DNA of 33,569 nt from Dicyema japonicum (taxonomy: Eukaryota; Animalia; Dicyemida). The notes below the pieces were generated by a model. The model saw nothing but the letters and a program-made list of their open reading frames with translations. It searched no databases and was not told the DNA's origin. The translations under genes were made by a program, and so were the position numbers. Shown here one piece after another: positions 1-32,638 of this stretch. Where the stretch lies: contig RDEW01000017.1 of assembly GCA_011109175.1 (NCBI GenBank), positions 1,166,539-1,200,107 of the forward strand. Reading direction: 5' to 3'. How positions within the stretch are numbered: position 1 is the stretch's first letter; each line of letters begins with the position of its first letter.

Positions 1-904
1 ATGTCCATACCTTGAAGTTTTTAAAACCCTTCCAAAACAGAGGGAGAAATCAAATGATTCTATTTTGTGCCAGCCTGGCATGGGATCCAAGTAATAACAT
101 GACGCCAATAGAATTGGAGGAGAAGGAAAAGACAAAACAACAAAAAACATGTAATTTCGTTTGACCATTTTCCGTCTTCTATCTCCAGATCAACTGTGCC
201 ATATGGAGAGGTATCCTGCAGACTCTTCACCCGATCTCTGACGATTACGATGGGAGTCGAAGATTAATTTTATCAACAACTGTCATGAGTTCAAAGAGGT
301 TATATATACTGCTCGCTTTCTTGACTCTAAAATATTTTAATTAATATTTATTACTTTAACAAATCACGAAAAGCAGAGGAGTCTAAAACAGAGATAGGCC
401 CAAGCATTTGCAGGACTTGCGGCATGAGGCCAACTAACTCCCTCTATAACATTCCTTGCTAATAAAGATGTTAAAGTTAAGTTATTATAGGAGTTGAGTT
501 TTCCTGTTCAATTTTAGCATTCAGAGTTTCAAGCAATCCGACTCATTTCAATCAGTCGTATACACGAGAATGTCTAAGAATTATTAGCAACAATAGAGTA
601 TACGGAGTGTGTCTTGAGTATTTAAGTCTTCTTCAATTCTATCTTGACGACACAGGTATAAATGTATGCATTTAACCATCTTATCTTTCCAGGTAGTCGC
701 CGTTTAACATATAGTCACACTTTTCCGTAAAGTTTCAAACAACCCAATTAAAGCATGTTCATTTACGGCCGAGTCCAATCTTGTATTTCCCACGGTGTCG
801 ATCATTTTTTTACACCATCATATTTTGATTTCACTTGGTTTTCAAAAAATGTTCCATTTTTATCCTCTAACAAACAAAGGAATGAGTTCCATCTATTTCT
901 TAAG

Positions 905-10600: not shown

Positions 10601-11098
10601 TGAAATGGTAAAAAACAGTTCCTCGTTTATGCTCGAGTATTTTCACACTAGAAGGAGGTAAATTCTGTAGGCTAAGCAGGGTTAAAAGACTACCGTAATT
10701 ATTCTGAAAAGGGGAGATCGGAACTTGGAAAATACGACATGGGAGATCTTTAAAAAGACTACGGAGTTTTAAAGCAGCGCCTTTCCGGCATCTTTCCTGT
10801 TTCTACCAATCTCAGTGGCCTCGTAGATGTTTGCCGTGATTATGCACTCATAGAAGTTGTTATCTGAGTTGATGCACCTTTCTTTGAACATTGGAAAAGG
10901 AATTTTGTTCTTACTACAGAAATATGAATCCAGGATATGTCATCTTCATTCATTTTTAATATTGAATATTACACAACCAAACAATCCCAAACACATATAT
11001 TTAAATAATTGTTTTACTCTATAATATATTAATATATTTATACATTAATTATTAAAAATTGACTTAAAAAAGACTAGACTAATTAACTTAGAATTTTA

Positions 11099-11170
11099 GT
11101 GGCGTGGTCTACCAAATCAAAAAGATTTGGAAACGCCCAGGAGGCACCTAATGCCCACCGAGAAAGGACC
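11099..11170 (+). ncRNA. Putative HDV-like pseudoknot/ribozyme, copy A
   Basis: P1 GGCGU/ACGCC, P2 GGUCU/GGACC, P3 CCAAAUC/GAUUUGG, P4 GGCA/UGCC. Confidence 0.55.
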
Positions 11171-11750
11171 GATAGACCCCATCCTCCTGGGGATATTCTC
11201 GTCTCGGGCGATGCATTTCACGGAAGATCGAACCTTCGCGGAGGCAATCCTTAGCCCATCGAAGAGAAAAACACTTAACGAGTCTCCAGCTAAACATAAA
11301 TGGAATTAAAGGAAAAATCAGTGAACTCCGCTGACTCCTGGCTTTTCAAGAGATTAACGTTGCGATGATTCAAAAGACCAAACTCTCTTTTAATGACCCT
11401 ACCCCTACATTCCCAGGATACAAAGCTACCAGGAAGGACCGTTAAGAAAAAAGGTGGATGTCTGCTCACTCTATTCAAAAAGAACATGAAATGCAGAGAC
11501 ATCTCGGAAATGAGGAAACTTGTTGGGGATGATGATGTAACAGAAATAATTGGAATCTCGCTCTGGACAACGGAAGGTAGACTATGCCTTGTGATTATCT
11601 ACGTTCCGCCTCCTGGTTCCTGTCCGAAGAGCTATGCCAAACCTATCAAGACTGTCTTTCTTCGATGAAATCAACATCGGCGGGGATTTGTATGCGAAAC
11701 ATCCATTATGGCTGTCAACTAAACTACAATGTTGGAGGGGCAAAGGGAGT
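11099..11750 (+). mobile_element. 5' fragment (copy A) of the Ingi-like retroposon: structured leader plus decayed APE endonuclease
   Basis: Begins GTGGCGT after AT-rich flank. Reads LQLNINGIKGKISELR..., GGCLLTL, IIYVPPPGSCP, GDLYAKHPLW with stops and frameshifts. Confidence 0.85.
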
Positions 11751-12029
11751 CGACGCAAGTAGCAACCCATACCAAAGGTTTCAATCATTTGCTTTTTTAA
11801 TCTCAAAGGAAGGAATAAAAGAATTAATCTTTTATCGAAGACATTCAACAGAAAACCATTTACTTGCTTGTCAGTGTCACAGAAATAGAATAATTCGGAT
11901 AAATAATATCCAAATAACTTAGACTTATTAAGAAAATTTGACAATATCGATTATCCTGATTGTCTGTCACTTTTTGTTTTCAAAGCGACACGCTTTTAAT
12001 CGTCAAATACATGATAATATGGTTAGTTA

Positions 12030-12290
12030 AGTAACTACGGCCATACAAACTTGTAGGAGCCCTGCAGCTATTAAATAAGACGCAGTAAATGCCGGTCTCT
12101 ACCATAGATTGGTCAGTCCTGGCATTGTAGACAAACGTTGTTATAATTCATGACATTCAAATATGTGATTTTTTGCCACTCGGATATGTTTAAATATGGT
12201 TGTGTTAACTTAACTCGAATATCAAACATAATTAAGATAAAATTACATAAATCACACACTGGAGATTTCTGTGAACGCTGTTTGATATTT
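12030..12290 (-). mobile_element. 3' fragment of a CCHC-bearing Ingi/I-type retroposon
   Basis: Reads CHEL*QRLSTMPGLTNLW*RPAFTASYLIAAGLLQV; DNA is homologous to 30668-30745 and 32565-32637. Confidence 0.7.
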
Positions 12291-13200: not shown

Positions 13201-15173
13201 TTCATCACGATGAAAAATTATATTCAAAATAAGAAATAAATCGACGTATAAAATATATTACAAATCAACTTATTAAAAAAATTTGACAGTCTTTCTTGAA
13301 GATATCTTGGTATAGGATCAAACTTCTGAAATTATCTTCAGGGGTCGAAGGCATGTACCCAGTTAAAACAGATGTCTCAAAATAGTTGACACCTCCCGTG
13401 AAACAATTCTCCGCAAGATCTTTCCAATAGACTAAATCTTGTGCCTTGGCATATAATTTTTCGATGACTTTCAGAAGATTGAATTTCATTAATCAAGTTT
13501 TTGCTTTCATCCACCACCTCAATCATCAACTCTAAGTAGGCTATCGATTAAAAGAATAGCCAATTTATGTTAGAGACCATTTGTTACCCAAAGCATATCC
13601 CAGAAGATCAATGCAAACTCCCATGATTGGGTCATAATTATAAGAACTGTAATCACGTTATATCTCATCGGTTTTGTGAGTTAAAAAGGGAAAAATCTCC
13701 ATATTATATAACATTTGCATGATTCATTCGAAATGTATTTGTTGAAGAAAAGTTTGGAGGGAATTTTGTAAATCCAGCAGGGCTTTAAGGTGTTCTTTAG
13801 ACGATGTCAATAAAATTCGTCGAATTGGAGAAACAGACACCTGTCCAGAGTATTCTATCTCTATTAAGTAAGAGCAGGAAATCATTTAGCTTAGATTTGG
13901 CAGAGTCTTTTCTTAGATTAGGATATCTATATTTTTAAGGTTTAAAATTATACCACAATTATTCGTGATGTCAACTGATCTGACATTGAGTTGACAATGA
14001 CGTTCATTTGTTTTCTCCCAACCTAGTCTCTACGTAAAATCGTTTGGTATTTTTAATCACCAACGAACCCCACAAGATCAAATATTTAAATTTTAATCAA
14101 ATAATAAAAATATTTTAATTTTATAAGAATTAAGGCTTAATTATAACTTTCTATTTAATTAATATATTTAGGCACGTGTCTAAGCTAGGAAACTTAAAAA
14201 TTTAGACACTCAAAAAATTAGCCACGTGGTCGGGCCCAGGTGGTCAAGACATGTGGGTACTCCAAATAAATCGGGGCTCATTTGCTATTGAAATATTTAA
14301 AGCAAATTAACAAATAAGCTTATTAAATCAATTTAAAAAATAGCTTTTTAATTTCTAAAACCAAATTATTAAAAGTGTTATTTTGAGCTTAAAACAAGCA
14401 CTTTTTCTGGTCCACGAATAGATAAAGATTCTCCGGGATTTGACCCCACTTGCCCCAACTTTTTTCGGGTACGCACTTGCATATATGTTGCCCCTTTAAG
14501 ACTGGCATACTTGTCCTGACCTTCGGTCCCCCAGGGATCACAAATGAAGACTTTGAGTTTCGTGAAATTTCACTAATATCACCTGTCAAGTGGCGTGACC
14601 TTCAATGCTAATTTCAAAAACTTTCAACTTTAATCATTTCTAGGCATTAATACAAGAACCCAGAGATCCCTGAGATGGGACACTGGGAGACAGCCCACGT
14701 GGGTAAAAAATCAAAACTTTATTTTTTTAAACTGTTAATTTAAACACTTTTCTTCTTACAAATGCAATAATAAACTACTTATTTCAAGTCTCCTAAGCAC
14801 TTTAAATCAAAATAAAAGTGTCCCACAAAAAACTAAAAAGCACGTGGTCAAAAAACTTTTTCAAAAGTGAGATATAATATAACTAAAATTCATTATAATT
14901 GTAAGTAATACTATGGCTACAGTCTGGTTACAATCGGTTACTTCTAGAGGAAGTTTTGGTCGAAAAATGTGGACCTTTTATTGGGGTAACTGACAAATCA
15001 TGTACTCTGAGGTGTTTAATAAGTTATACAGCGTTTTAAATAATGTAAATAAACTTAATTAGCTTTATAAAGATTTTAAGTAATCTCAAGTCAGTCCTAG
15101 ACCTTCAAAATCTTGAGTAATTTGCTTAACATAGTCGATGATCCATGTCCAAATAATCGAAATTGCTTTTCTA

Positions 15174-15276
15174 GGGACCAGATCTCCCAAACTACGGGAC
15201 GGATCAAGCTAATTTTTTCGGAGGAACTATATTAAAGAGAGAAAAAGGGTTTTGAATTTTTTGGGAGATCGGTCCC
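15174..15276. repeat. Short inverted repeat (17-bp arms)
   Basis: gggacc(a)gatctcccaaa at 15174-15191 versus tttgggagatcggtccc at 15260-15276. Confidence 0.7.
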
Positions 15277-15984
15277 AGCTAGCGGGAGATACAGGAACTT
15301 TTGTGATGGTTCAGATATCATTTCGATATTAAAGCAATCTTGACTGAATTTAATATGCGGAATTTATTAACTTTACTAAAGTAAAACACATTTGATATTT
15401 TTTTAGGGATCAATCACTTTATTAGTGAGATCCACTCGATGTCTCATAGTGGGGTCAATTTGACCACCTATATCCCCACAATAGCAGATTGGAAGACAAA
15501 AGCTGAATTACTGTTAGAGTCAATGTGGGGAGAAATTGTATTAAAAAGTTATAGAGGTTTGTGCACAAAACACAGAGAATTAGCTGATGACTTAGGATAT
15601 AGAATGGATATAGAATGTATCATAGTGATCTCTAGAATCCTTTTATAATCAAAAAAAATCAGTTTTGACGAAAATTGAAATCAAAGTTCGTTTGATATAA
15701 AACAGAATTTTTAGTAGTCGATCACTAATTTGAAAGGTTATACGAGGAGATTAAGAAAACAAGAGACTTTTCTATATATTTTGTGACCGCAAATTTATAG
15801 AAAACTCATAAAATTAAAAGAAACTAGGGGAATTATGGACGTATGGAGATATTCTAGATAAGTGGGATCCGGTATTGATTTTGACAGAATACATTAAACA
15901 AAAAAATTTATAGATGGACTTCTTCTGACAAGTGGAGGCAAGGCGGGAAAAATCACAACAAAATTTTTCAAAAATTTTAAACTT

Positions 15985-16460
15985 AATCGACATCGTACAT
16001 CGGTAGAGAGGGGTGGTGCCCACATAGTTGACTTGCAAGGTTTACCTGGACGTCCCTCGGAAGAGAGGATTCTGTTGGTCTATTGGAGGCGGGGCCGGTG
16101 TAGTATTTTGTTATCATTGAGTCTTCGGATGCTTCTCGTAGCACAACAAAATCGTGTGTCTGTTTCAGACGAGTCCGATCATTGGTGGTGGAAGAGATGG
16201 ATGATACCATTCGGATGTTGGTTATAATAATCCTTCTTTTGTTTTGTGGTTTGCATAGAAAGTGATAGGGTTGGTCTGAGCTTGGGAGAGGAACTGCATA
16301 GCTCTCATTTCCGAATGGTTTTCAATTAGAAGGATCTTTGATTCCCAATGTAGATGATCAATAAGGGGTTGATTTGAGACATTCAGTAATGTTTGGACTT
16401 TTGTAGTTCGTCGATGCCACTCAACCAGCAAACTTGAAGCGATTAAAGGTAAATAAATAA
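15985..16460 (-). mobile_element. Post-RT C-terminal fragment of an Ingi/I-type retroposon
   Basis: Reads PLIDHLHWESKILLIENH...QFL and PPPIDQQ/ESSLPRDVQVNLA..GHHPSL. The gggcaccac-ctctctacc-a--tacgat stretch matches 30780-30810. Confidence 0.7.
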
Positions 16461-16499
16461 TAAAATAACACAGGAAATATTCGTCTTGATCGTCTGCGA

Positions 16500-16840
16500 C
16501 CCCGTTCACAACGTAATCTTCCACAGGTGTCCTGGAAAGACAACCACTTGCACGTCATCTGAATGTAGAAAATTCTTCCATGGCGGCATTGCAGTGTGTT
16601 TCTTTACCCATCCGTAAAATATGTCCAAAAGACGCCAACGGAATTCAAGTACGTTCAAACTTATTGGTCCACAATTAGTCTGTATAATTTATTGTTTGAG
16701 ATTTTCTTTGTACAATAATATCCAAGGAATTTTCTTAGTTGGCCACTGTGAAATCAGTCGAGTTGTTCCATGACTTTCTTTGACGTTCCCCAAGTACCTG
16801 CGTTGTACAAGAAAACAGTACATACGGCAATAACTATATA
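16500..16840 (-). mobile_element. RTE-like RT C-terminal fragment
   Basis: Reads VFLYNAGTWG...EQLD*FHSGQLRKFLG...CGPISLNVLEFRWRL/FGHILRM across frameshifts. Confidence 0.7.
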
Positions 16841-16896
16841 TATTTATTTTATTTATTTAACCCAAGAACACCAATAGTTAATTTAATTGTATTAAA

Positions 16897-19726
16897 CTAA
16901 TTAGGTGATCCGGCTGCCTCCATCAGGTCTCTCATCTTTCTCCGGTGGACCTTCCGAGATTCAACACAGCTTCTTTGGGGACGGGAGGGTTTTGAAAGAA
17001 AAGCAAGCGCGGTGATGTAAAGTCTTCTAGTAAGACCCAATCCATTGGAGCATTGTAGGAAGTTGGATTTTCGGCACAGAGCGGCGAATCCCTTCCCATT
17101 TTGTCCAATAAGGTCTTCCAGAGAGGTGGGTGTGAGACTGACTGTTCTCACGAGCTTGCCGATAGTTGTAGCTGATAGGGACTGAATATCACTGATTTTC
17201 TGTTTGTTCGTCCAGGATAGGTTGATTCTCAAGACGCACAGGCGTAGCTGATAGATGGCTCAATGAATTGTTTATGTAGTAGTTTCAATGCTGGGAAAGG
17301 GGTTCTGATGCAACCAAAAATAGATTTGATCAAACCAAGCTTTCTTGAAAAGGCTCCGGAGATATATTCGACATGAGAGAAGAAGGTCATGTGCGTGTCA
17401 AAGGCGACTCCTAAGATTTTCAATTTCTTCGTAAAAGGAATTTTAGTTTGATTGATAAATAAATCAACGGTCATTCTTCCAAGACGTTTGTCTGAGGTAA
17501 ATAGGGATGTGGAGGACTTCTCAGGAGATATATCAAGTCTGTTGTAGACTAACCAATTTTGAATCACGTGTAGTTGTTTTTGAACTCTTTCTGAGGCTTT
17601 TAGGAAATCCTGGTCACGAAATCCAATTAGAATGTCATCAGCATAAAAGAGGAGAATATCGTCTTTATCAACTGATCGTGGCATATCAAACATAAAAAGG
17701 TTGAATAAGGCGGGGACGAAGGAGAGCCTTGCGGAACACCATTGGGAAGTAGTCTCGAAAGTGATTTGGTCCCATCCATACAAACCCGGGCCCTTCTCCC
17801 GCTGAGGAAATTCGAAAGCCAGAGTTTTAGATTGAGGTTAATGGAGAGTCCAAATAATTTCCTGGTTAAGATTTTCCTGGAGACAGAGTCAAAGGCTTTA
17901 CGCAGATCCACAGAGCAGACGATGGTTTTAAGGTGACGAGGACTTGAGTTGAAGCCATCAAGGATAAATTGATTGAGAGAAGTAAGGTGGGTGGACGTCG
18001 AATAGAACTTTCTGAAGCCATGTTGAGAGGAACTGAAGGAAAGGGACGGGGAAATGAGATAAAGTACCAGTTTTTCCAATAATTTTGAAAATTAACATAA
18101 TAGAGAAATTGGTCGGTATAAAGCGGGATTGTTTTTGTCCTTGCCAGGTTTTGGTATTGGGCGTATGTGGGAAAGTTTCCAAATCGTAGGGATGGAATTC
18201 ATGTTCAAAGAATAGTTGAAAATAAGTGAGATTACCCCAATAGTAACCGGTCCAAGGTGTTTAAGAAGTATTGAAGGGATGCCATCTGGACCACAAGAGC
18301 GGGAGGGATTTCATCTTCAAGCCTTCGAATACGTTTAAATGAGAAATAAAGGTGATCGGCGGGATTCTTTTAGGTCTATCGAGAACAAAGAGGGTCCATC
18401 CATTTTCTTGAAGGTTTTGTGACTTATACCGGTATGTTTTCTTTAGGGCCAAGTCTTTTTATTGACTTCCAGACCATCTGGGCAGATTTATGAAATGGGA
18501 GAGAGCAGATTCGCTTTTCCCACTTGTTTGCTTCAGCCCTTCTGATCCTTTTTGAAATTTCATCATTGAGAGACTTTGTCTGGGATTTCTGTCCCAGGAG
18601 GGGAGGTACGTGTCTTTTCAAGCGGTTTCTTTCTCTGATTAGTGATTTGGTATTCTGATCCAAAAATTCGTTGTAGTATTTGAACCTTCCACGTGGGATG
18701 AATCTACTACAAGCTTCAAGAATTATTTTGTTCAAATGGTAGACGGCCTCATCAATAGAACGGAATATTTTCAAGTCAAAGCAAAGTAGTGCCTGGTCAA
18801 CATGTTTTGAGTAGCCGTCCCAATTTGCTTTTTTGTAGTTGAAGAATGAAACAGTTGTTTTTGGAAGATAGAGAAATTTTTTGAATCGAATGTTTATTAA
18901 ATTAATCCGTAGCGTACTGTCCATGAAATGTTGGGTCCAAGAGTTGATGAACAGAAAGTGATGTCGGGGGATGTAGATGAATCACCTTTTTTGATTGGAG
19001 TTGTCGTATGCATAGTGGGGCTGTTGAGGATTGACATGGAGAAGAGTTGGTTTATTAGGGATAGTCCTCTTGAGTCAGTTGTTTGCGATTTCAACCAGGC
19101 AGGGTGCTTTGCATTAAAATCCACACAAAGTATTAGGTTTTCTAAGTTGTTTAGTCAGGATAAGTCCTACGAGAATCCTTTCGGGCAAGAGGACGGAGGA
19201 GGGACATATATGTTAGCAATTTTGAAAGTACTCGATCCGTTTGATATTGAAATTCCGGAGATTTCCGTGGTCCCATCGTTAGTTAGCGACTTAAGTTCAG
19301 CGGATATGTCAGAATAACGAAGGTTCTTTCTGATGATGGTAAGAAGGCCTCCACCGAGGCGGTTCGAGGCGGTTCGCGGATGCAGTCAAAACCTGGAAAA
19401 TGAATGGTAGTCGCGGACTGAGTCAACTTGCTTTCTTGAAGCAGGATCACGTCAATGTTTTGGTTGTTTGTGAAGGATCGTAATTCGAGAATTTTGCTCT
19501 TTATTCCGTTGATGTTAATCTGTAGAATTGAAAGTTGGGGACCTGGGTTGAGCTCGATGTCGCCAGAGAGTAGTAGAAGGATCCCATTGAGAGTTGATGG
19601 GAGAAGAGTTGAAGGAAGCCGTCCGAAGGAACCAACTTCGGATGGGGGTGAGCAAATGGTCCTTTTCCTAGGTGCATTATGTGCACCCTGAGCGCCTCCA
19701 GAAACGTTATGACTGGTAGACCACAT
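16897..19726 (-). pseudogene. Disrupted 2A-APE-reverse transcriptase polyprotein (~940 codons)
   Basis: Joins ORFs 19283-19726, 18897-19124, 18424-18924, 17627-18079, 17229-17783 and 16897-17232 through several frameshifts and stops. Confidence 0.9.
19538..19579 (-). other. 2A/StopGo ribosome-skipping motif LLLLSGDIELNPG|P
   Basis: Exact D(V/I)ExNPGP consensus with upstream leucines, placed directly before the APE domain. Confidence 0.9.
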
Positions 19727-19734
19727 GACGCCAC
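19657..19734 (-). ncRNA. Putative HDV-like pseudoknot/ribozyme, copy B (78 nt)
   Basis: P1 GGCGUC/GGCGCU, P2 UGGUCU/GGACCA, P3 CCAG/CUGG, P4 GGUGCA/UGCACC, in HDV strand order and at the exact 5' boundary of the element. Confidence 0.6.
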
Positions 19735-22605
19735 GTTTAACTGTTTAATCTTCTAAACCAAAAAACATTTGCAGTGAAATATTTATTTTTTATTTATTTT
19801 TATTTTAATAAATTATCAAAGACAAAAAAAATTATTAATTAGCAGATGAATATTTATTTTAAACAAGATTTTCAATTATGGCGACTACGTTGAGAAACGT
19901 TGAGTTAGATAAGTAAGCATTTATTTACGTGAAAACTCCAGGCTTAATTTATTGCCAGGGACAAGAGCTGGGAATACCTAAAAACATCGAGCTAAGGTAT
20001 GAGGTTACTGCGGGATCAAGCTGATTTGAAAACAATGTCCAACCTTTCAAAGAGCCTATTTACAAAATCTTACTTAGAAATCCTAAAGACAGCCAAAATA
20101 TTAACTAACAAAGCGTCAAATAAAAAAAGTTCGAATACTCAGTGTACTGTAGCGTTGAGGAAAACGCTAGAGAACACGTTATTATTTATCATTAACCCCA
20201 GTTTTACAAGTCCAGCACAAACAGTCACAACTAATTTTTCCAAGTAAGGTACCCAAGGGAGAATGTCTGCTTGTGCCGACGAAATCCATCCTCCAAATAG
20301 TTCATTACATGCTTCCGTTTCCGAAGAGAGGTGGGGAAGTAGTCCGCCCTTTTCCATTTTCATCACACGCCCTACCGTTGCGGGGATCACTTCATTCTGT
20401 AGCGGAAGAGTTTTCTTCATCATTGTATGCAATAAAGGAAAAAATAGGAAGATCACTCACAACTGATATGTCGTATCAGAAGAACTCGTCGCCTCATGGG
20501 TAGGATCTGTTTGACGAGAATTGACCTTCGCTGAAAACACCATCTTTCAGATTCTAATGTTGGGTCAGAAAGCCAAAAATATGTTTTGCTGTAAAAGCTA
20601 CGTTTCGAAAATATTCCTCATTCTGATAACTGTTAACAGATACTGGCACAAATATTACTTTATATATGGAAATGAATGAAGAGGCCTTAAGAGACTACAG
20701 CTGAAGAGACTGAATAATACATCCCCGAAGCAAAAACCGATAGTAGTAAAAATAATATATTCATGAATCTGAATAAAACTGAATTGCTTCAACAGGTACG
20801 CATAAGATCCATGTACAAGGATATCGTAGGACTAACTACACTAGTTCGTCTTGAGGTGTTACGAATGGGGGTCGCATGGAACTCTGAAGTACAATCGCAT
20901 CAGCTACACTTGGTATATGCAGATTGGATAAGCGAAAAAAAATCCTAATTTATGTTGGGGTTCAAGTTGTAAGATGCCTGGACCTTTGAAGCTGAGATTA
21001 TCGAGAAACAACACTCGGTCCTGAACACATAAGATGTCCTAGGTGAAACCGAAGTAGAAAGAAGCTGTCATACTAGTCTTTGGAGTCTTTCTGGACTTCT
21101 CATAATATGATTTAGTTGACACATTGGAAGGACTTCCCATCAAGGTTCAAAATTGAACGATTCACAAATGTGGTAAGGAGGCTGAAAACCATGATGGTGT
21201 TCCTCCATTCTGAGGACATAACCAGATCTTCTTTGACAAGGTTAGGGTAGTTTAGATTTGGTGCGGTTCAGAAGCGACCTGTAGCAATCCAACGTAAAGA
21301 TCGCGGAGATCTGCCCGCACGAGTTTTCGTCGCTCTTTAAAGAGAAATGCCTTTTATGTGAGGGTTCACATTCATTCAAAAAAGTCATCTGATGCATGTC
21401 GTCGCTAAAATCTTAAGAAAGTGATACATCAAAGGGTGCATAATGAAATACAACTTTCCAGACCTCCATATAGAGTTCTTTCGGGGGTGATCTTGAGGTT
21501 ACTGCCTCTTGAGGAGATAATGAAACAGTAAAATATGGCAATGTTCTCTGGTGTGGACATACCCAGAGATCGAAGACGAAGAAAGAAAAGAAAAAAACCC
21601 ATCTTCTGGTCGTCTAGATAAAAAAAACGACACATCAACGAAGCCGATTGCTTGATACTGCTTGTATAGTCTTGTAAAGTTGAATAGTGTCTGCAGCGGA
21701 GGCGCACAAAGTAGTCACACACTTCCCAGAGTAGAATAGCTTCACTTTCATCAATTTTGGGGGACTTCTTCGTGTTTTTCTAGGACTCTTACTAACTAAT
21801 AAATCAAAATAAAAAATAAAATATGTATGGAAATACTGTCAGATCTGTATAAATGTGCATATATCTGTGAGAAATACGGCACTCTAATTAAGTATATACC
21901 AACTGGAAGAAATCCTATGTGAAGTCTGCTCTACGTCAAATTGAGTAAATGAGAACAAATTAAATACTAAAGTTTATGAGGTTTTTTTCGTTTTCAGAGA
22001 TTCAAAGGTTTCCTGATCAATGGACCAGCATAAAAATTATTATTTTTAAAATTAAAAAAAAGTCATTCTAATAAAGACTTACTGATAGATAATGCATCTT
22101 GTCTGCTTGTATCCAATATTCAAACATCGACATGGTATTTGTTTCAAAAAAGTACGACTTCTTTAATATAGCAATGTATAGCAAGAAATAAGCTTTTAAA
22201 ATGGGATATACTTTAAAAATGAGCACGTGGTTGAAAACAGAACTCGAATCCTACATCAGAAACTACACAGTTTTAAAGCAGATATTGTGCATTCACTAGG
22301 AAAAAACTACTTATTTTGGAAAAATCTCAATATTGGGGAATTTTTGCCCCATTTCCGGGTCGGATTGTTTTTATCCTAAAATCTGTGGGAAGGCCATATG
22401 GTAGTTCCCGCCTCTCAGTACCGATTTCAACTTTTCCCAATGTTTCTTTACCGACGCATTCAATGAGTTATTACTACGATTTTTGACTAAAAACCTTTCA
22501 GATTTTTAACTAAAAAAACTGATCGTCATACAAGAGGATAACAAATTAAAAGACTATAAAAAACCTTGACTTAGTGAAAAGATTTCAAACTAATAAAAAA
22601 TTAGT

Positions 22606-24330: not shown

Positions 24331-24467
24331 TGGACTTAATGGGTTATGTACACATTGGGCGTTTAATAATGAAAAAGATGAAAAAACTACTGCATCCCTT
24401 AATACTACAATTATTCGACGACTATTACATCTCAGACTACAACTACTCCAAATATATTGATTTTCTC

Positions 24468-24530
24468 GTGGCGTCATGTGGTTTACCTTTTGTGGTGGCG
24501 CTCAGTGTAATAATACACCAAAAAGAACCA
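24468..24530 (+). ncRNA. Putative HDV-like pseudoknot/ribozyme, copy C (63 nt)
   Basis: P1 GGCGUC/GGCGCU, P2 UGGUUU/GAACCA, P3 ACC-UUUUGU-GGU, P4 GUGUA/UACAC, J4/2 CAAAAA. Confidence 0.6.
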
Positions 24531-24610
24531 ATTGCTCTTCTCCATCCAGACTCTTTATGTCTGGATGGTATACCTCAACTGGAAACTCGAGATGTTGTTT
24601 GTTTCCCTGG

Positions 24611-24652: not shown

Positions 24653-24910
24653 AAACACTTTTTTATTATGCAACTCAATGCTAACGAAATAAAAACAAAG
24701 ATTCTGGAGTTATGATGTTTATTAACGAAGCACAAGATTGACATCTGCCTTATCTAAAGTCAAAACTTTCTACAAAGAGTTCAACCCCACTTTTTCCTGG
24801 ATACATCTCTATCAGAAAAGATCGCATTGGATGTGTGTGGCGGGTTACTCAACACTATTAAAAACGGTTTATCCTTCCACGATGTGAGCTCGCAAGTGGA
24901 TGATTTAATT

Positions 24911-25173
24911 CTACACGACAAGACCGCGGATCAAATTTCTATTGATCTTATTAATGCGTCAGAACATCTTATTCTAATCAACATTTACATTCCACCGCCG
25001 GGATCCAGTCCTAATAACTATGTTCCGAAGCTCGACAAACTACACGACAAGACCGCGGATCAAATTTCTATTGATCTTATTAATGCGTCAGAACATCTTA
25101 TTCTAATCAACATTTACATTTCACCGCCGGGATCCTGTCCTAATAACTATGTTCCGAAGCTCGACAAACTACA
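24911..25173. repeat. Tandem duplication, 129-bp unit (in-frame 43 aa within APE)
   Basis: ctacacgacaagaccgcgg starts at 24911 and at 25040. Confidence 0.95.
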
Positions 25174-25337
25174 AGAAATTCGGAATTTGTTACTATGTGG
25201 GGATTTCAAAGCCAAACATCCGCAATGGCTTAGTACCAAGTTAGAGATAATTACCGACTCTATCGAATAAACGGTGATTCTTATTCCCGTATATCTTCAC
25301 AAGGACACCTATCAGAAGAAATGACAATAAAATGACA

Positions 25338-25758: not shown

Positions 25759-26075
25759 ATCAAAAAAGTAGACTCCGTTCTCATTTTCGAAAACGATAGA
25801 TACACAGCTCAAAAAGTATCTTTAGCATGTTTTCCCGCAACAGTCAGCTTTAACCAAAACACTCAACTGTGAAGGATACAAATAGCCTGAATGTTTCCGA
25901 TCACAAGTCGACAGCANATCAAAAAAGTAGACTCCGTTCTCATTTTCGAAAACGATAGATACACAGCTCAAAAAGTATCTTTAGCATGTTTTCCCGCAAC
26001 AGTCAGCTTTAACCAAAACACTCAACTGTGAAGGATACAAATAGCCTGAATGTTTCCAATCACAAGTCGACAGCA
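25759..26075. repeat. 158-bp duplication around a single N
   Basis: atcaaaaaagtagactcc...gacagca starts at 25759 and 25918; N at 25917. Confidence 0.95.
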
Positions 26076-26289
26076 ATCTTCGATATAATTAAGCTAAAAA
26101 AGCTGTCCATAGAATAGGCCACATTCCACATTTTTTTCCAAGTACGTATAGATTAACCGAAGCATCAAGTTTACGAGATGAAGGATTCTCCCTGCAGTAT
26201 GGTCCCATGAATTTTTAATTTTCGGCATTTTAGCGTAATCACATCTTCGATTATTAAATTAATTATTATATTGAGCGACTTTAATAACT

Positions 26290-27060
26290 AGGTATTTTAC
26301 CTTATAAGATATGACCTCGAAACAATCAGTCCCACGATCCTAGGAGATTTTGATGATCCTCAATGTCATAAACTGGATATCAGCCAAATTTGTTGGAGAG
26401 TATATTTTAACATGTGTAACGCCCCAAGCAAAGTTTTGACCATAGCAAATAGGAATATCGTTATCCTTTCCATCGCAAAAAAGAAAAAACTAGTGGTGGC
26501 CAGAAGAAAAAGTGCATTTTTTAATGTCAAGTTGTTACCTCATGTCGGGACCAGCTATAAATTTGCTTAAAGGATGATAACCATCGATTCAGTGTCCAGA
26601 AATGCATTTTCATTAACACAAAATTAAGGTGAAAACGGAACAAGGTAGCTATTCTCACTGCATCGTCGTCAGAACGTTGCTAATTTTACCACATTGATAA
26701 ACATTCAACCAAGCATTTGTTAATTAATTTCTAGTCGTCTTGAAGCAGACCTCCAGTATCATATTGGTCTCAATTAACTCTTTCTTTTTCAAACCATATT
26801 TAGTGTGATTTCAGAATAATTCAGTCTTTTAGATCAATAAGAAAATGTCATCCTAATCGTCCACAGATCCAGAAATAAGAGATGTGGGAAAGTCAGAATA
26901 AACCAATTTTCAAACCATATTTAGTGTGATTTCAGAATAATTCAGTCTTTTAGATCAATAAGAAAATGTCATCCTAATCGTCCACAGATCCAGAAATAAG
27001 AGAAGTGGGAAAGTCAGAATAAACCAATTGCATCCACATTTGGTTGCGAATAATATTAAG
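26290..27060 (-). pseudogene. Possible decayed CLC chloride channel/antiporter fragment
   Basis: Ordered remnants YGLKIGLF../FPTSLISG../GRLG (cf. YGL...G.F.PSL..GA..GRL.G), VRI (cf. VRM), LDIK/NALFL and G*YPVYD...IVGLIVSRSYL (cf. first CBS domain GFPV...L.G.I.RS.L). Confidence 0.4.
26786..27029. repeat. Tandem duplication, 121-bp unit
   Basis: ttttcaaaccatatttagtg...aaaccaatt occurs twice. Confidence 0.95.
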
Positions 27061-27197
27061 GATACTAATAGCATCTATAGTCATCAAATGTATATTTAAA
27101 ATTACATTAACGGTTGACCTAATTTTACGGTCAAAGAGAAATATGACCTTTTTTTTATTTCAAGTAAAAAGATCATCGGAGATTGAAAATCTTTTAG

Positions 27198-27503
27198 TCC
27201 TGATAGATACGTAGCCTAAATCGCACAAAAAATTATTTTGTCATTAATTGATTACCTAATTCGATTTTTTAATATTTCACATAAAATCAATTCGAGAGAG
27301 CAAATGTTGGTCATTCGTTACTTAGAAAAATATCATCTATTTGATTCTAATCCTGATAGATATGTAGCATAAATCGCACAAAAAATTATTTTGTCATTAA
27401 TTGATTACCTAATTCGATTTTTTAATATTTCACATAAAATCAATTCGAGAGAGCAAATGTTGGTCATTCGTTACTTAGAAAAATATCATCTATTTGATTC
27501 TAA
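27198..27503. repeat. Tandem duplication, 153-bp unit
   Basis: tcctgatagata...ttgattctaa starts at 27198 and at 27351. Confidence 0.95.
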
Positions 27504-30345
27504 AGAAGCAAAAGATTCTCCCATCATACTCAGACTAACTACTTAATACTGTTTTGTGTTAACTTCACGTCTAATCCTCCAAAATAAGACAATTAAATTA
27601 CCTTGCAGAACTATTTCTGAAAAAAAAATTTCATTTACCCTGCAGTACTCGGGTTAGAAAAAGAAATAGATATCATCATAATTCAAAACTAAAATCCAGG
27701 TCATCCGCATATCATAATTCCTATATAGAAGTAGGACAATTTTTAGCACTCAAATTACGAAGAGCAGCTTCCAGATAGACAACAAAATTATTGGTTATTG
27801 TGAGTCAACTTCTGAAGAGTCAATGTGCGTAGCCTCTCTTCAGATTCACTTAAAATTTAATTTTTGCGCAAATTGACCTGTAATTAAACATTATTCAAAA
27901 GGTATTAAACTTTTTGACACAATTTTTAAACATTTTGATAAGGTTACTAAACATTAAAAAAAAGTTATTAAACATTTTTGACAAATTTATTAAACTTTAT
28001 GGTAAAATTATTAAACAAATCGGAAAACCATGTTAATTGTGTGAATTTAATTAAATTATTTTTTAATTTTATTTATTTAATCCAACACTTTAGTTAATAA
28101 AATTATTATTAATTATGACGACTGTATTTCATGTAGTAATTTTTATTTCTTGTGGTAATCGTATATTCATTATTTTGGTATTTAATCTCATAGATGTTCA
28201 CTTTTCTCGTGTTAAACTTGTCATTCGATATTTTGACATCACAGAATATATGCAAAAACGAATTAACAGTAACTAGAACTCTGTATTAAATATAATTTAT
28301 TAAGATATTGGATTAATTGTACCTATTCGATAACTGGCCTACCTGATTTTAAAGTAGTTGCATTAAGTGTTCAAAATGTTAAAATTAAACCTGATGTCAA
28401 ATTTTCATTATTGAGAATGAATTTAGATAGATTGTATTAATTATTAATTATTCATAGTCAATGTGATTATTATGATGAAAGTTTAAAAACTGTAGACAAC
28501 CAAACATTCCCACCTACCATTAAGATATTGTTACATATTTTTTTAAATTTATAGATATTTTTAATACTGTAATTCCCTCAAATTCATATCGATCGAATTT
28601 GCGGAAAATTTATCATTACTTTCTTAAGTGTATATATTTGTAATTAACGTAGATGGTTTCCTCGAGGAATAAGTGTAATTCAAATTTTTAAAATTACTTC
28701 CAACTTTATTATTTTTAATGAGTATTTTTAATAATAATAATATAGTGTTATCGTTTGCATCAATTCATTCAATAATCCAGAGGCGTATGATATTATATTT
28801 AGTATAGATATGAAGCAATAACTAATAGACAATTAGCTATCGAAGATAATAAATTGTATATGTTAGAAAATAATACATTTAGAAAATACGGCAGGCCGAC
28901 AAGTGAATATTTCAGTCTATTAATCTGCAGTTGCATTAAAAACAAGTATAATGTACTTGGAAATTGAGGAGTTCAATTAAACAATTAACTACTTAATCGT
29001 TCATTTTTCTGGGATATAAAATTGGTGTTAATTAATTCAAATTTATTATGATTTAATTATTATCCTGGTTGGACAACTGAATCACACAGCTATACTTTTG
29101 TCACTAAAAGAATAATTTCACTTAAAAAGACGATTACAGAAGGAATCGACTCTGATAGGTGTTAAAGAACAACGGTTTTCTTCTATTTATGCAAAACGGC
29201 GTATGCAATAACCTAATTAATCATATAAGGAATTAACTACTAGCTTTACTCACACACGATTATTCTCAATGAAGAGGAATATTTTCAAACAGTTGTGAAC
29301 GATGATGGGAGTATTGACTATATAAGGAGCATCGTCATTTTACTTCGAATACTGCAATATAAACCAAAATGGTGACATATAATGAAATATTTAGACCAGG
29401 TGAGTTAATACAACTCTCTTTGAAAGATTCCGAAACTGATCAAAACACTCCATGAAGACGAGGACGTTTATCTTCCCTACCCATAAAGAACACAGTAAAA
29501 CGAAGCACAAAATTAATAAAAACGAACCATACCCTCTTTCTAGAACACCAATTGGGGTGACCTTTATCAAAAACTCAAAAACAACACCAAACAGAACTGG
29601 ATCCTTCTCCACAAACTTACAGGTACAGCGACAGCTTGAATAACACCAAGTTCAACTTGAGAATGACATGCGCACAACATCTACGCTACGAGTTCCAGCA
29701 TCCCATTGAAGGTCCGTCTTACACGAACCTGGATCTGCTAAATCGTAACTAAAGCGGAGTTCAGCATGCATTTCAGCGGGGAGGTTCTCACAGAGATAAT
29801 CTTTGAGAAATTATTTTGAATAATTAACTCAAGGTTGTTCCGTTCACTCAAATCCTTGAAATCCAGTATAAAAAAGACACTCCTTGCGGCTAGGCTTGAC
29901 AAGTGACGCCGTCATCAGTGGAGATTCACTGCTGAACTGATAGTCAAAAGGACATACACACAAGAAAAAGAAAAAGCAAAGAAGTAAGAGCATTCCTTAG
30001 TTCCCCTTTTACGAATAGTTATAATAACTGTTCTTTACTTAAATAAAGTGTGTGTACTGCACGAGCGATACCCTAGGTATCTTACGTTTTATGGCAACGC
30101 GGGAGTGCTTAATTATTATTATTGCGGCTAGTCACAATGGAAGCTTTATTTCTACATTCTACCTAACATAGTTTCACTAGTGATCGTGCTATTATTTTCC
30201 AAAGTGTCGTTAAAACATAAGTGGCCATTTTTTATTTGGATTTTATTTGAGGTTACCAATTTTTCTAAACTTTTCTCTATTAAAATAGCAAAAACTATGT
30301 TCATGCCTCAAATAATGCAAGTTTCCAAATAAAAAAGGGAGAAAC

Positions 30346-30605: not shown

Positions 30606-30667
30606 AAATGCAAATCATTTTAAAATACCGCTATGACGTGTGCTATAGGAGAAACATGCAAATCATC

Positions 30668-30822
30668 GTTCCCATAGATCGGTCAGTCCCGACATTGTAG
30701 ACGAACGTTGTGCTAATTCATGACATTCAAATAGGTGATTTGTTATCAACACGTAGATGTTGCAAAAAGGACAGAGGATATCGTATGTTGGTAGAGAGAG
30801 GTGGTGCCCAGACTTATTTGTC
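30668..30822 (-). mobile_element. C-terminal CCHC zinc-knuckle fragment of an Ingi/I-type retroposon
   Basis: Reads YDILCPFCNIYVLITNHLFECHELAQRSSTMSGLTDLWER (CxxC-x8-H-xxx-C). Confidence 0.8.
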
Positions 30823-32519: not shown

Positions 32520-32638
32520 CAAACTAGGATGATTAGTTTGTTAGTTTAGTAACCCCAGCCTTACTAACTTGTAGGAGGCCAGAAGCTATTATGTAGGATG
32601 CAGCAGATCTTGGTCGCTCCCATAGATCGGTCAGTTCG
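32520..32638 (-). mobile_element. 3' end of the CCHC-type Ingi/I retroposon
   Basis: Reads LTDLWERPRSAASYIIASGLLQVS, followed by an imperfect ctggggttact...atcctag stem. Confidence 0.7.

Follow-up and report, generated by a model that had tools for sequence, protein, structure and literature searches.

An RNA fold with HDV topology near the 5′ ends of dicyemid LINEs that probably does not set the ends of their copies

Described 5′ ribozymes and the dicyemid family

Self-cleaving ribozymes resembling those of hepatitis delta virus (HDV) are known at the 5′ ends of the retrotransposons R2, R4, RTE, Baggins and L1Tc, where cleavage accounts for the release of a promoter-less element from host transcripts. 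Here we analyse 33,569 nucleotides of the dicyemid Dicyema japonicum (assembly GCA_011109175.1, contig RDEW01000017.1, positions 1,166,539 to 1,200,107 of the forward strand; this whole stretch is hereafter the window), in which an earlier note had described three divergent copies, A, B and C, as beginning with an HDV-like fold. All three lie where that note placed them and are the 5′ parts of related long interspersed nuclear elements (LINEs), non-long-terminal-repeat retrotransposons encoding an apurinic/apyrimidinic endonuclease (APE) and a reverse transcriptase (RT), as Pfam matches to Exo_endo_phos_2 and RVT_1 indicate. Comparison across this family points to a fold that is selected as RNA and that probably does not determine where new copies end.

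The closest known system is, by analogy, that of L1Tc, whose first 77 nt hold an internal promoter together with an HDV-like ribozyme and a 2A sequence (PMC3383444). This L1TcRz/Pr77 module of Trypanosoma cruzi (ingi clade) resembles the dicyemid case in the HDV-like fold that an APE LINE carries within its initial ~77 nt, its 2A and its promoter, here putative (PMC3383444, PMC3185411), whereas L1TcRz maps to +1..+77 with the cut at the element start, and the dicyemid family has 7-11 inherited nt before the first helix, P1, and an AUG inside the predicted fold. In R2, a self-cleaving 5′ ribozyme strips the template RNA of upstream sequence (PMC3774820), and bases that the template has lost in this way are not passed on to new copies; what lies upstream of the R2 cut is either lost in each cycle or is target ribosomal RNA paired within P1, whereas the dicyemid leader is neither P1-paired nor lost. 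The twister T-variants of Schistosoma Perere-3 likewise place a self-cleaving RNA (in the dicyemids a candidate one) at the 5′ end of a non-site-specific LINE of a parasitic spiralian, where cleavage enables downstream translation (PMC8501958), but they belong to another ribozyme class and the Perere-3 target duplications abut the cut site. More generally, HDV-like ribozymes have been linked to translation initiation of retrotransposon messenger RNAs (PMC4908430).

The dicyemid family encodes its endonuclease and RT in one open reading frame (ORF), and most lineages have an N-terminal 2A motif, GD(V/I)ExNPGP, upstream of the endonuclease. Other single-ORF APE LINEs (CR1, L2, Rex1, Crack, Ingi) likewise encode 2A just upstream of the endonuclease (PMC3708506), but the more distant 2A-LINE relatives that we fetched are without the RNA motif. 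The ORF of copy B begins nine bases into the motif, with an ATG, and continues through it to GDIELNPGP and then the endonuclease. When 200-nt 5′ ends were used as BLAST queries, each gave at least 40 matches in the genome; a covariance model built from 70 copies matched at least 150 places genome-wide, and 107 places in 90 loci (L numbers below) plus the window. At least nine lineages carry the fold across the D. japonicum genome and a sister dicyemid. We distinguish A, B1, B2, young C, old C, D, E, E2, F and G, of which F and G come from a sister-dicyemid contig.

A double pseudoknot kept by compensatory change

With bases numbered from the G of GTGGCG and 3′ partner strands marked by a prime, the helices (P), loop (L) and joining segments (J) of the fold form a nested double pseudoknot in the HDV-like order P1-P2-P3-L3-P3′-P1′-P4-P2′ (Table 1). 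P1 comprises bases 3-8 (GGCGUC/GGCGCU, 6 bp; 7 bp in lineage G), J1/2 is AU, and P2, the pseudoknot helix whose 3′ strand ends the motif, comprises bases 11-17 (GUGGUCU/GGACCAU, 7 bp). P3 has 3 bp (ACC/GGU) and P1′ follows directly after P3′; in A and B, L3 spans 15 nt and contains additional pairs, and in lineages C, D, E, F and G it has 6-7 nt. The 2 nt of J1/4 are CA (GG in F and G), P4 is a variable hairpin of 3-8 bp, and J4/2 consists of 6-7 A-rich nt (CAAAAA, CGAAAAA, ACAAACA) with a C at the P4 end. The start AUG covers J1/2 and the first base of P2. Alternative P1 registers that take in G1, U2 or the leader were rejected on inspection, U2 standing opposite C and G1 opposite A, as was a pairing of the leader with L3, which B1 alone has.

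Table 1 Positions of the folds, their host elements and related features, in window coordinates unless a locus is named
Feature	Position	Strand	Remarks
Copy A fold	11099-11172	+	Lineage A; 5-nt deletion removing J1/2 and AUG
Copy A element fragment	11093-11726	+	Lineage A
Copy B LINE body	15990-19740	-	Lineage B1; frameshifted; RT pieces 17229-18079; cut at ~15989 by another repeat
Copy B RVT_1 matches	17229-18079	-	Pfam
Copy B ORF, 147 aa	19283-19726	-	Starts at AUG inside fold; leader peptide, 2A, endonuclease start
Copy B 2A core, GDIELNPGP	19538-19564	-	Within 147-aa ORF
Copy B leader, TTAAAC	19735-19740	-	Directly upstream of GTGGCG
Copy B double pseudoknot, 79 nt	19656-19734	-	Lineage B1
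Copy B GU	19733-19734	-	
Copy B P1	19727-19732 with 19691-19696	-	
Copy B AUG	19724-19726	-	In J1/2 and P2 start
Copy B P2	19718-19724 with 19656-19662	-	
Copy B P3	19715-19717 with 19697-19699	-	Plus 2 inner pairs
Copy B L3	19700-19714	-	
Copy B J1/4, CA	19689-19690	-	
Copy B P4 hairpin	19670-19688	-	
Copy B J4/2	19663-19669	-	
Copy C leader, TTTTCTC	24461-24467	+	Young C lineage
Copy C fold, compact, 64 nt	24468-24531	+	Lineage C; P3 3 bp, L3 6 nt, P4 GUGUA/UACAC
Copy C ORF start	24476	+	
Exo_endo_phos_2 match	24827-25270	+	E 1.4e-4, under Pfam gathering score
Decayed D-type motif copy	40-114	-	18.8 bits
Related LINE 3′ end	12022-12179	-	Ends GGTTAC-TTAAC-(TAAC)n
Similar LINE 3′ end	30666-30785	-	
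Similar LINE 3′ end	32533-32637	-	
Repeat interrupting copy B	15001-15989		Abundant
Repeat with internal sub-repeats	25900-29400	+	At least 3.5 kb
Lineage D example	L010:759-843	-	Covariance-model match
Lineage D copy with extension	L010:759-930	-	
Lineage D copy with extension	L088:2500-2671	+	
Lineage D copy with extension	L014:62-230	-	
Lineage D copy with extension	L081:2867-3005	+	
Lineage E example	L051:1720-1799		
Lineage E2 example	L086:1796-1885		
Short (TTA)n-tailed repeat	L067		
Short (TTA)n-tailed repeat	L088:2249-2466		
Short (TTA)n-tailed repeat	L052:309-525		
Short (TTA)n-tailed repeat	L029:645-846		

Pairing is far better in this arrangement than in displaced ones: across the 70 copies it holds in 86% of pair cells, a share that drops to 30-47% on sliding the partners by 1-3 columns, and in 14 lineage representatives in 93.7% against 31-62%. 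None of 500 shuffles reached the observed pairing or covariation score in the 70 copies, nor did any of 500 in the representatives; because few independent events separate related sequences, these counts are not to be read as probabilities, but their direction is uniform. RNAalifold, supplied with no structure, recovers the 7-bp P2 with two of its pairs changed on both sides. Two-sided changes occur in P1 (C8-G to U-A in lineage A), in P2 (G14-C to A-U in D; C16-G to U-A in C, E, F and G) and in the extension of P3 (G-C to A-U between B and A), while the P4 stems differ by lineage (GUGCA, GGGCA, GUGUA, GUGCC, GAUA, GAUAC, GCUGAU, CUGUGGA), each with its complement. Lineage G has rebuilt P1 as GAUCGUC/GACGAUU, with a G-C pair replaced by A-U and one extra U-A pair, and has kept the G·U at its base. 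The slid-partner and shuffle tests and the recovered P2 bear out the covarying pairing reported in the earlier note, as well as its strand order (P1a-P2a-P3-P1b-P4-P2b). The individual pairings that it listed also exist, with P2 at 7 bp rather than 5 bp; window copy A is damaged, and its lineage, which has the AUG, reads GGCGUU/AACGCC in P1.

Such compensation also bears on what is being conserved. A DNA-level internal promoter or initiator, with GTGGCGTCATGTGG at the terminus and the RNA pairing secondary, would account for the uniform 5′ ends and for the terminal motif keeping its outermost 5′ place in lineage D as well, where a second copy lies further in, and the first 77 nt of L1Tc are indeed a promoter; a binding site, however, predicts no two-sided compensation in four helices, some of whose partners lie 60 nt apart, and we consider this explanation quite improbable. 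We give scarcely any credence to conservation through the leader peptide encoded at the N-terminus. In A, B, C, F and G the reading frame that begins at the AUG stays open across the fold, with MW(F/S)T in common, but this explanation is contradicted by lineage D, which reads AUG UGA, has stops in the other frames of most copies and nevertheless keeps all helices, including a compensated P2 change. The lineage G peptide has fully diverged, being unrelated to that of lineage C past MWFTF, with the pairing retained, and the compensatory P4 changes between A and B fall at synonymous sites. Between A and B, the motif is the sole stretch still alignable as DNA. Because the lineage D fold is non-coding and lineage G has kept the pairing through divergence of its peptide, the constraint is, on this evidence, on the RNA and not on the peptide; judged by these patterns of substitution, the fold is a real, selected RNA element with HDV topology.

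Two lineages show further changes around the fold. Lineage D has a 65-nt 5′ extension that opens with a second GCCGC-GTGGCGCC-ATGTGG and includes a short upstream ORF. The second copy of this sequence indicates that the 5′ P1 strand was duplicated, and lineage D may be a non-autonomous derivative; R2 ribozymes offer a parallel in their duplicated P1 strands, long J1/2 and extended 5′ ends (PMC3774820). The copies of a B1 sub-lineage (L011, L012, L014 and L018; ~1590-1700 in each) all lack 9 nt of P4, deleted in frame between direct repeats. The sub-lineage retains a 3-bp GGG-UGCA-CCU mini-hairpin and has still spread, which fits the known dispensability of P4.

The inherited leader and the ends of the copies

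The earlier note had placed the motif at the exact 5′ end of the element, preceded by unrelated flanks, with a cut just before the first G that would define this end. On comparison of the copies, the exact 5′ end and the unrelated flanks fail, and a cut that defines this end finds no support. Every lineage has an inherited, lineage-specific leader of 5-9 nt, followed by GT, ahead of P1, which begins at the third base, directly behind the conserved GU, and lies 7-11 nt inside the inherited 5′ end of the element. The leader is TTAAAC in B1 (15-18 of 18 copies at each position), TAAAAC in B2 (5-8 of 8), TTTTCTC in young C (14-19 of 19) and TTAGC in lineage A (20-25 of 27), some copies of which have 13-15 upstream nt in common. 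It is GCCGC in four D copies, ATTAGC in one E copy (L051), TTTTAGC in F (L091, where matches from the D. japonicum genome, G000, start at 2987-2988), CTTCTC in the single G copy, and GTTAGC or GAAAC in individual old C copies. The base at -1, before GTGGCG, is C in 74 of 82 copies, and GTG forms the first three bases in 72 of the 82, the remainder resembling point mutations. Of 12 full-length matches of F-lineage copies between the two species, at 77% identity, at least 10 begin at the leader. Contigs from four sequencing runs of one sample part from a young C copy at -1 or -7.

Since P1 starts at the third base, the HDV rule puts the cut between U2 and G3. None of the 82 copies begins at G3, and the leader and GU have been propagated, so the RNAs behind these copies were uncut at the canonical site. 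In ribozyme-terminated retrotransposons the 5′ end of a copy is the cut site and upstream sequence is lost; no lineage of this family shows this pattern. The fold is probably not at the exact 5′ end, and it probably does not set the ends of copies.

An active ribozyme could nevertheless free the transposition template and define the 5′ end, as first proposed, if the target supplied the leader, whether by a short duplication of target sequence, by a preference for certain targets or by a jump of the template onto a tail. The LINE 3′ ends have a common conserved 3′ untranslated region ending in GGGGTTAC-TTAAC-(TAAC)n, and the leaders TTAGC, TTAAC and TTAAAC are similar to the units TTAAC and (TAAC)n of these tails; moreover, new 5′ ends often lie directly behind the tail of another element (L016, L067, L085), which suggests insertion into tail-like microsatellites. 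This version is improbable for several reasons. It does not provide for the constant GU upstream of P1, no 3′ junction shows GT, and GCCGC in D, TTTTCTC in C and TTTTAGC in F, where the tail is (TAA)n, are unlike their own tails. The leaders are lineage-specific and common to two species, some A copies agree over 13-15 upstream nt, and the absence of copies that begin at G3 counts against it as well. No downstream repeat of the 5′ flank was found at A, B or C, of which B and C are interrupted by other repeats, and the full-length F copy (L091) has no target duplication of at least 6 bp. A search for empty sites among the fetched loci returned only insertions adjoining the tails of other elements.

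A protein search with HMMER found one close relative, P0001 (49% identity, same N-terminus), and also matched many 2A-LINEs; a word-index protein search returned nothing, and exact look-ups of P0010 and of the L041 ORF gave no record. P0001 is encoded on the 509-kb contig VCDQ01001009.1, which belongs to the Octopus sinensis assembly GCA_006345805.1 (loci L091/L096) and is the source of lineages F and G; there, 2.58 kb of unique flank is 91% identical to G000:C173:1220-3805 of the D. japonicum genome. This flank identity is most simply explained if the contig is DNA of a close dicyemid parasite within the host assembly, which is likely, rather than by horizontal transfer.

Some further features of the elements and their surroundings stand apart from the fold. 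In lineage A (L062-L087), the 2A consensus has been lost ~100-130 nt past the AUG, where PPGDIFVPGR replaces GDIExNPGP; it is kept in lineages B, C, F and G. A short repeat with a (TTA)n tail lies directly upstream of LINE 5′ ends in two loci and may be a non-autonomous partner element. The repeat at window positions 25900-29400 has at least 40 copies at 80-92% identity and is distinct from the one that interrupts copy B.

Resemblance to HDV ribozymes and possible roles

In its dimensions the fold agrees with R2 ribozymes, and with those of R4 and Dong: P1 measures ~6-7 bp and its 3′ strand comes directly after P3/L3, P2 has 5 bp or more, J1/4 is 0-2 nt long and P4 varies, with a large J1/2 tolerated (R2 helix sizes from PMC3774820). 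With the HDV genomic and CPEB3 ribozymes it shares the nested double pseudoknot and an expected cut at the first P1 base, to which cleavage maps in HDV-like ribozymes (PMC4908430). Some lineages also resemble them in a G·U where P1 begins: in B1, B2, C and G this pair is present and follows a U at -1 of P1. Near the P4/J4/2 border, in all lineages a C stands 5-7 nt before P2′, at or beside the end of P4, in a column that is not fixed. Lineage G has UUCUCGU as L3 and GG after P1′. The L3 of the HDV genomic ribozyme is UCCUCGCU, followed by GG, and lineage G comes close to it. Taken together, these likenesses suggest that the fold is probably an HDV-like ribozyme or the descendant of one. Self-cleavage, in at least the compact lineages, is a tentative proposal that falls a little short of probable.

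Our tentative preference, held at slightly less than an even chance, is for the fold as an HDV-like 5′ cis-module of a single-ORF APE/RT LINE family that does not define copy ends. The element would be transcribed from its own start at the leader through an internal promoter; a cut, if any, would take off the short leader and yield a 5′-OH RNA for translation, with the AUG 6 nt from its end, whereas the RNA reverse-transcribed into new copies would be the uncut one. As the copied RNA is uncut, the fold would serve translation or ribonucleoprotein assembly at the 5′ end rather than the definition of ends.

Several observations weigh against this proposal. P1 opens with G-C in A, in D and in one old C copy; J4/2, A-rich and 6-7 nt long, compares with 4 nt in HDV, the catalytic C of HDV-like ribozymes standing at the head of a short J4/2 (C-N-R-A); L3, about 6-8 nt in HDV-like ribozymes, is poorly conserved, U-rich and variable, or in A and B expanded to 15 nt with additional pairs; most lineages have CA as J1/4; and the helix P1.1 between L3 and J1/4 (UG:CA or UC:GG) can be drawn only in C, D, F and G. 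The comparison with HDV-like Rfam models (HDV, CPEB3, drz), of a kind suggested in the earlier note, gave no relevant match, either in the window at gathering thresholds and at E up to 10 or in L092 and L093 at E up to 0.5, which is weak evidence against because the models are narrow and ignore pseudoknots. Single-sequence folding energies are ordinary, with z-scores of -0.1 to -2.3 that carry no information here, since a nested fold can take up P1 or P2 but not both. The internal promoter is deduced solely from the uniform inherited 5′ ends, and a cut messenger apart from an uncut template sits uneasily with the cis-preference of LINEs.

Many of the same observations would be expected of a non-catalytic pseudoknot, resembling HDV in topology only or descended from a ribozyme now dead, that acts as a purely structural 5′ element, for example by placing the start codon, binding an element protein or blocking 5′ decay. 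That uncut RNA is copied, that L3 varies and J4/2 is long, that Rfam gives no match, and that the fold persists in the non-coding, possibly non-autonomous lineage D all fit such an element. It does not predict that the G·U at the base of P1 and the U before it should be kept even in the rebuilt P1 of lineage G, that a C should be kept beside P4, or that lineage G should have an HDV-like L3 and GG, and the place of the fold, at the 5′ end of a LINE, is one in which ribozymes are known. We regard a non-catalytic fold as unlikely, though it deserves serious weight.

A more specific extension of the cis-module proposal, and a distinctly doubtful one, is that an HDV-like variant with the AUG in J1/2, an expandable L3 and a 6-7-nt A-rich J4/2 acts as an RNA fate switch and not as an end-defining device. 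Cutting would strip a short capped leader to give a 5′-OH messenger whose first codons are the ribozyme itself, the ribozyme-encoded peptide would be shed by 2A, and uncut RNA would template new copies.

By analogy with described elements, the fold is probably a variant of the known HDV-like 5′ LINE module. What sets this dicyemid LINE family apart is that an HDV-type fold is under clear RNA-level selection, yet the copied RNA has kept bases that lie upstream of the predicted cut. Cleavage, should it occur, must have a purpose other than defining ends, for example in translation or RNA fate; should it not occur, these elements would offer a natural instance in which the HDV fold has been taken over as a structural module. 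In either case, the many covarying lineages constitute a ready-made mutational series, and the overlap of start codon, leader peptide and putative ribozyme, followed by 2A, would represent an unusual economy of coding.

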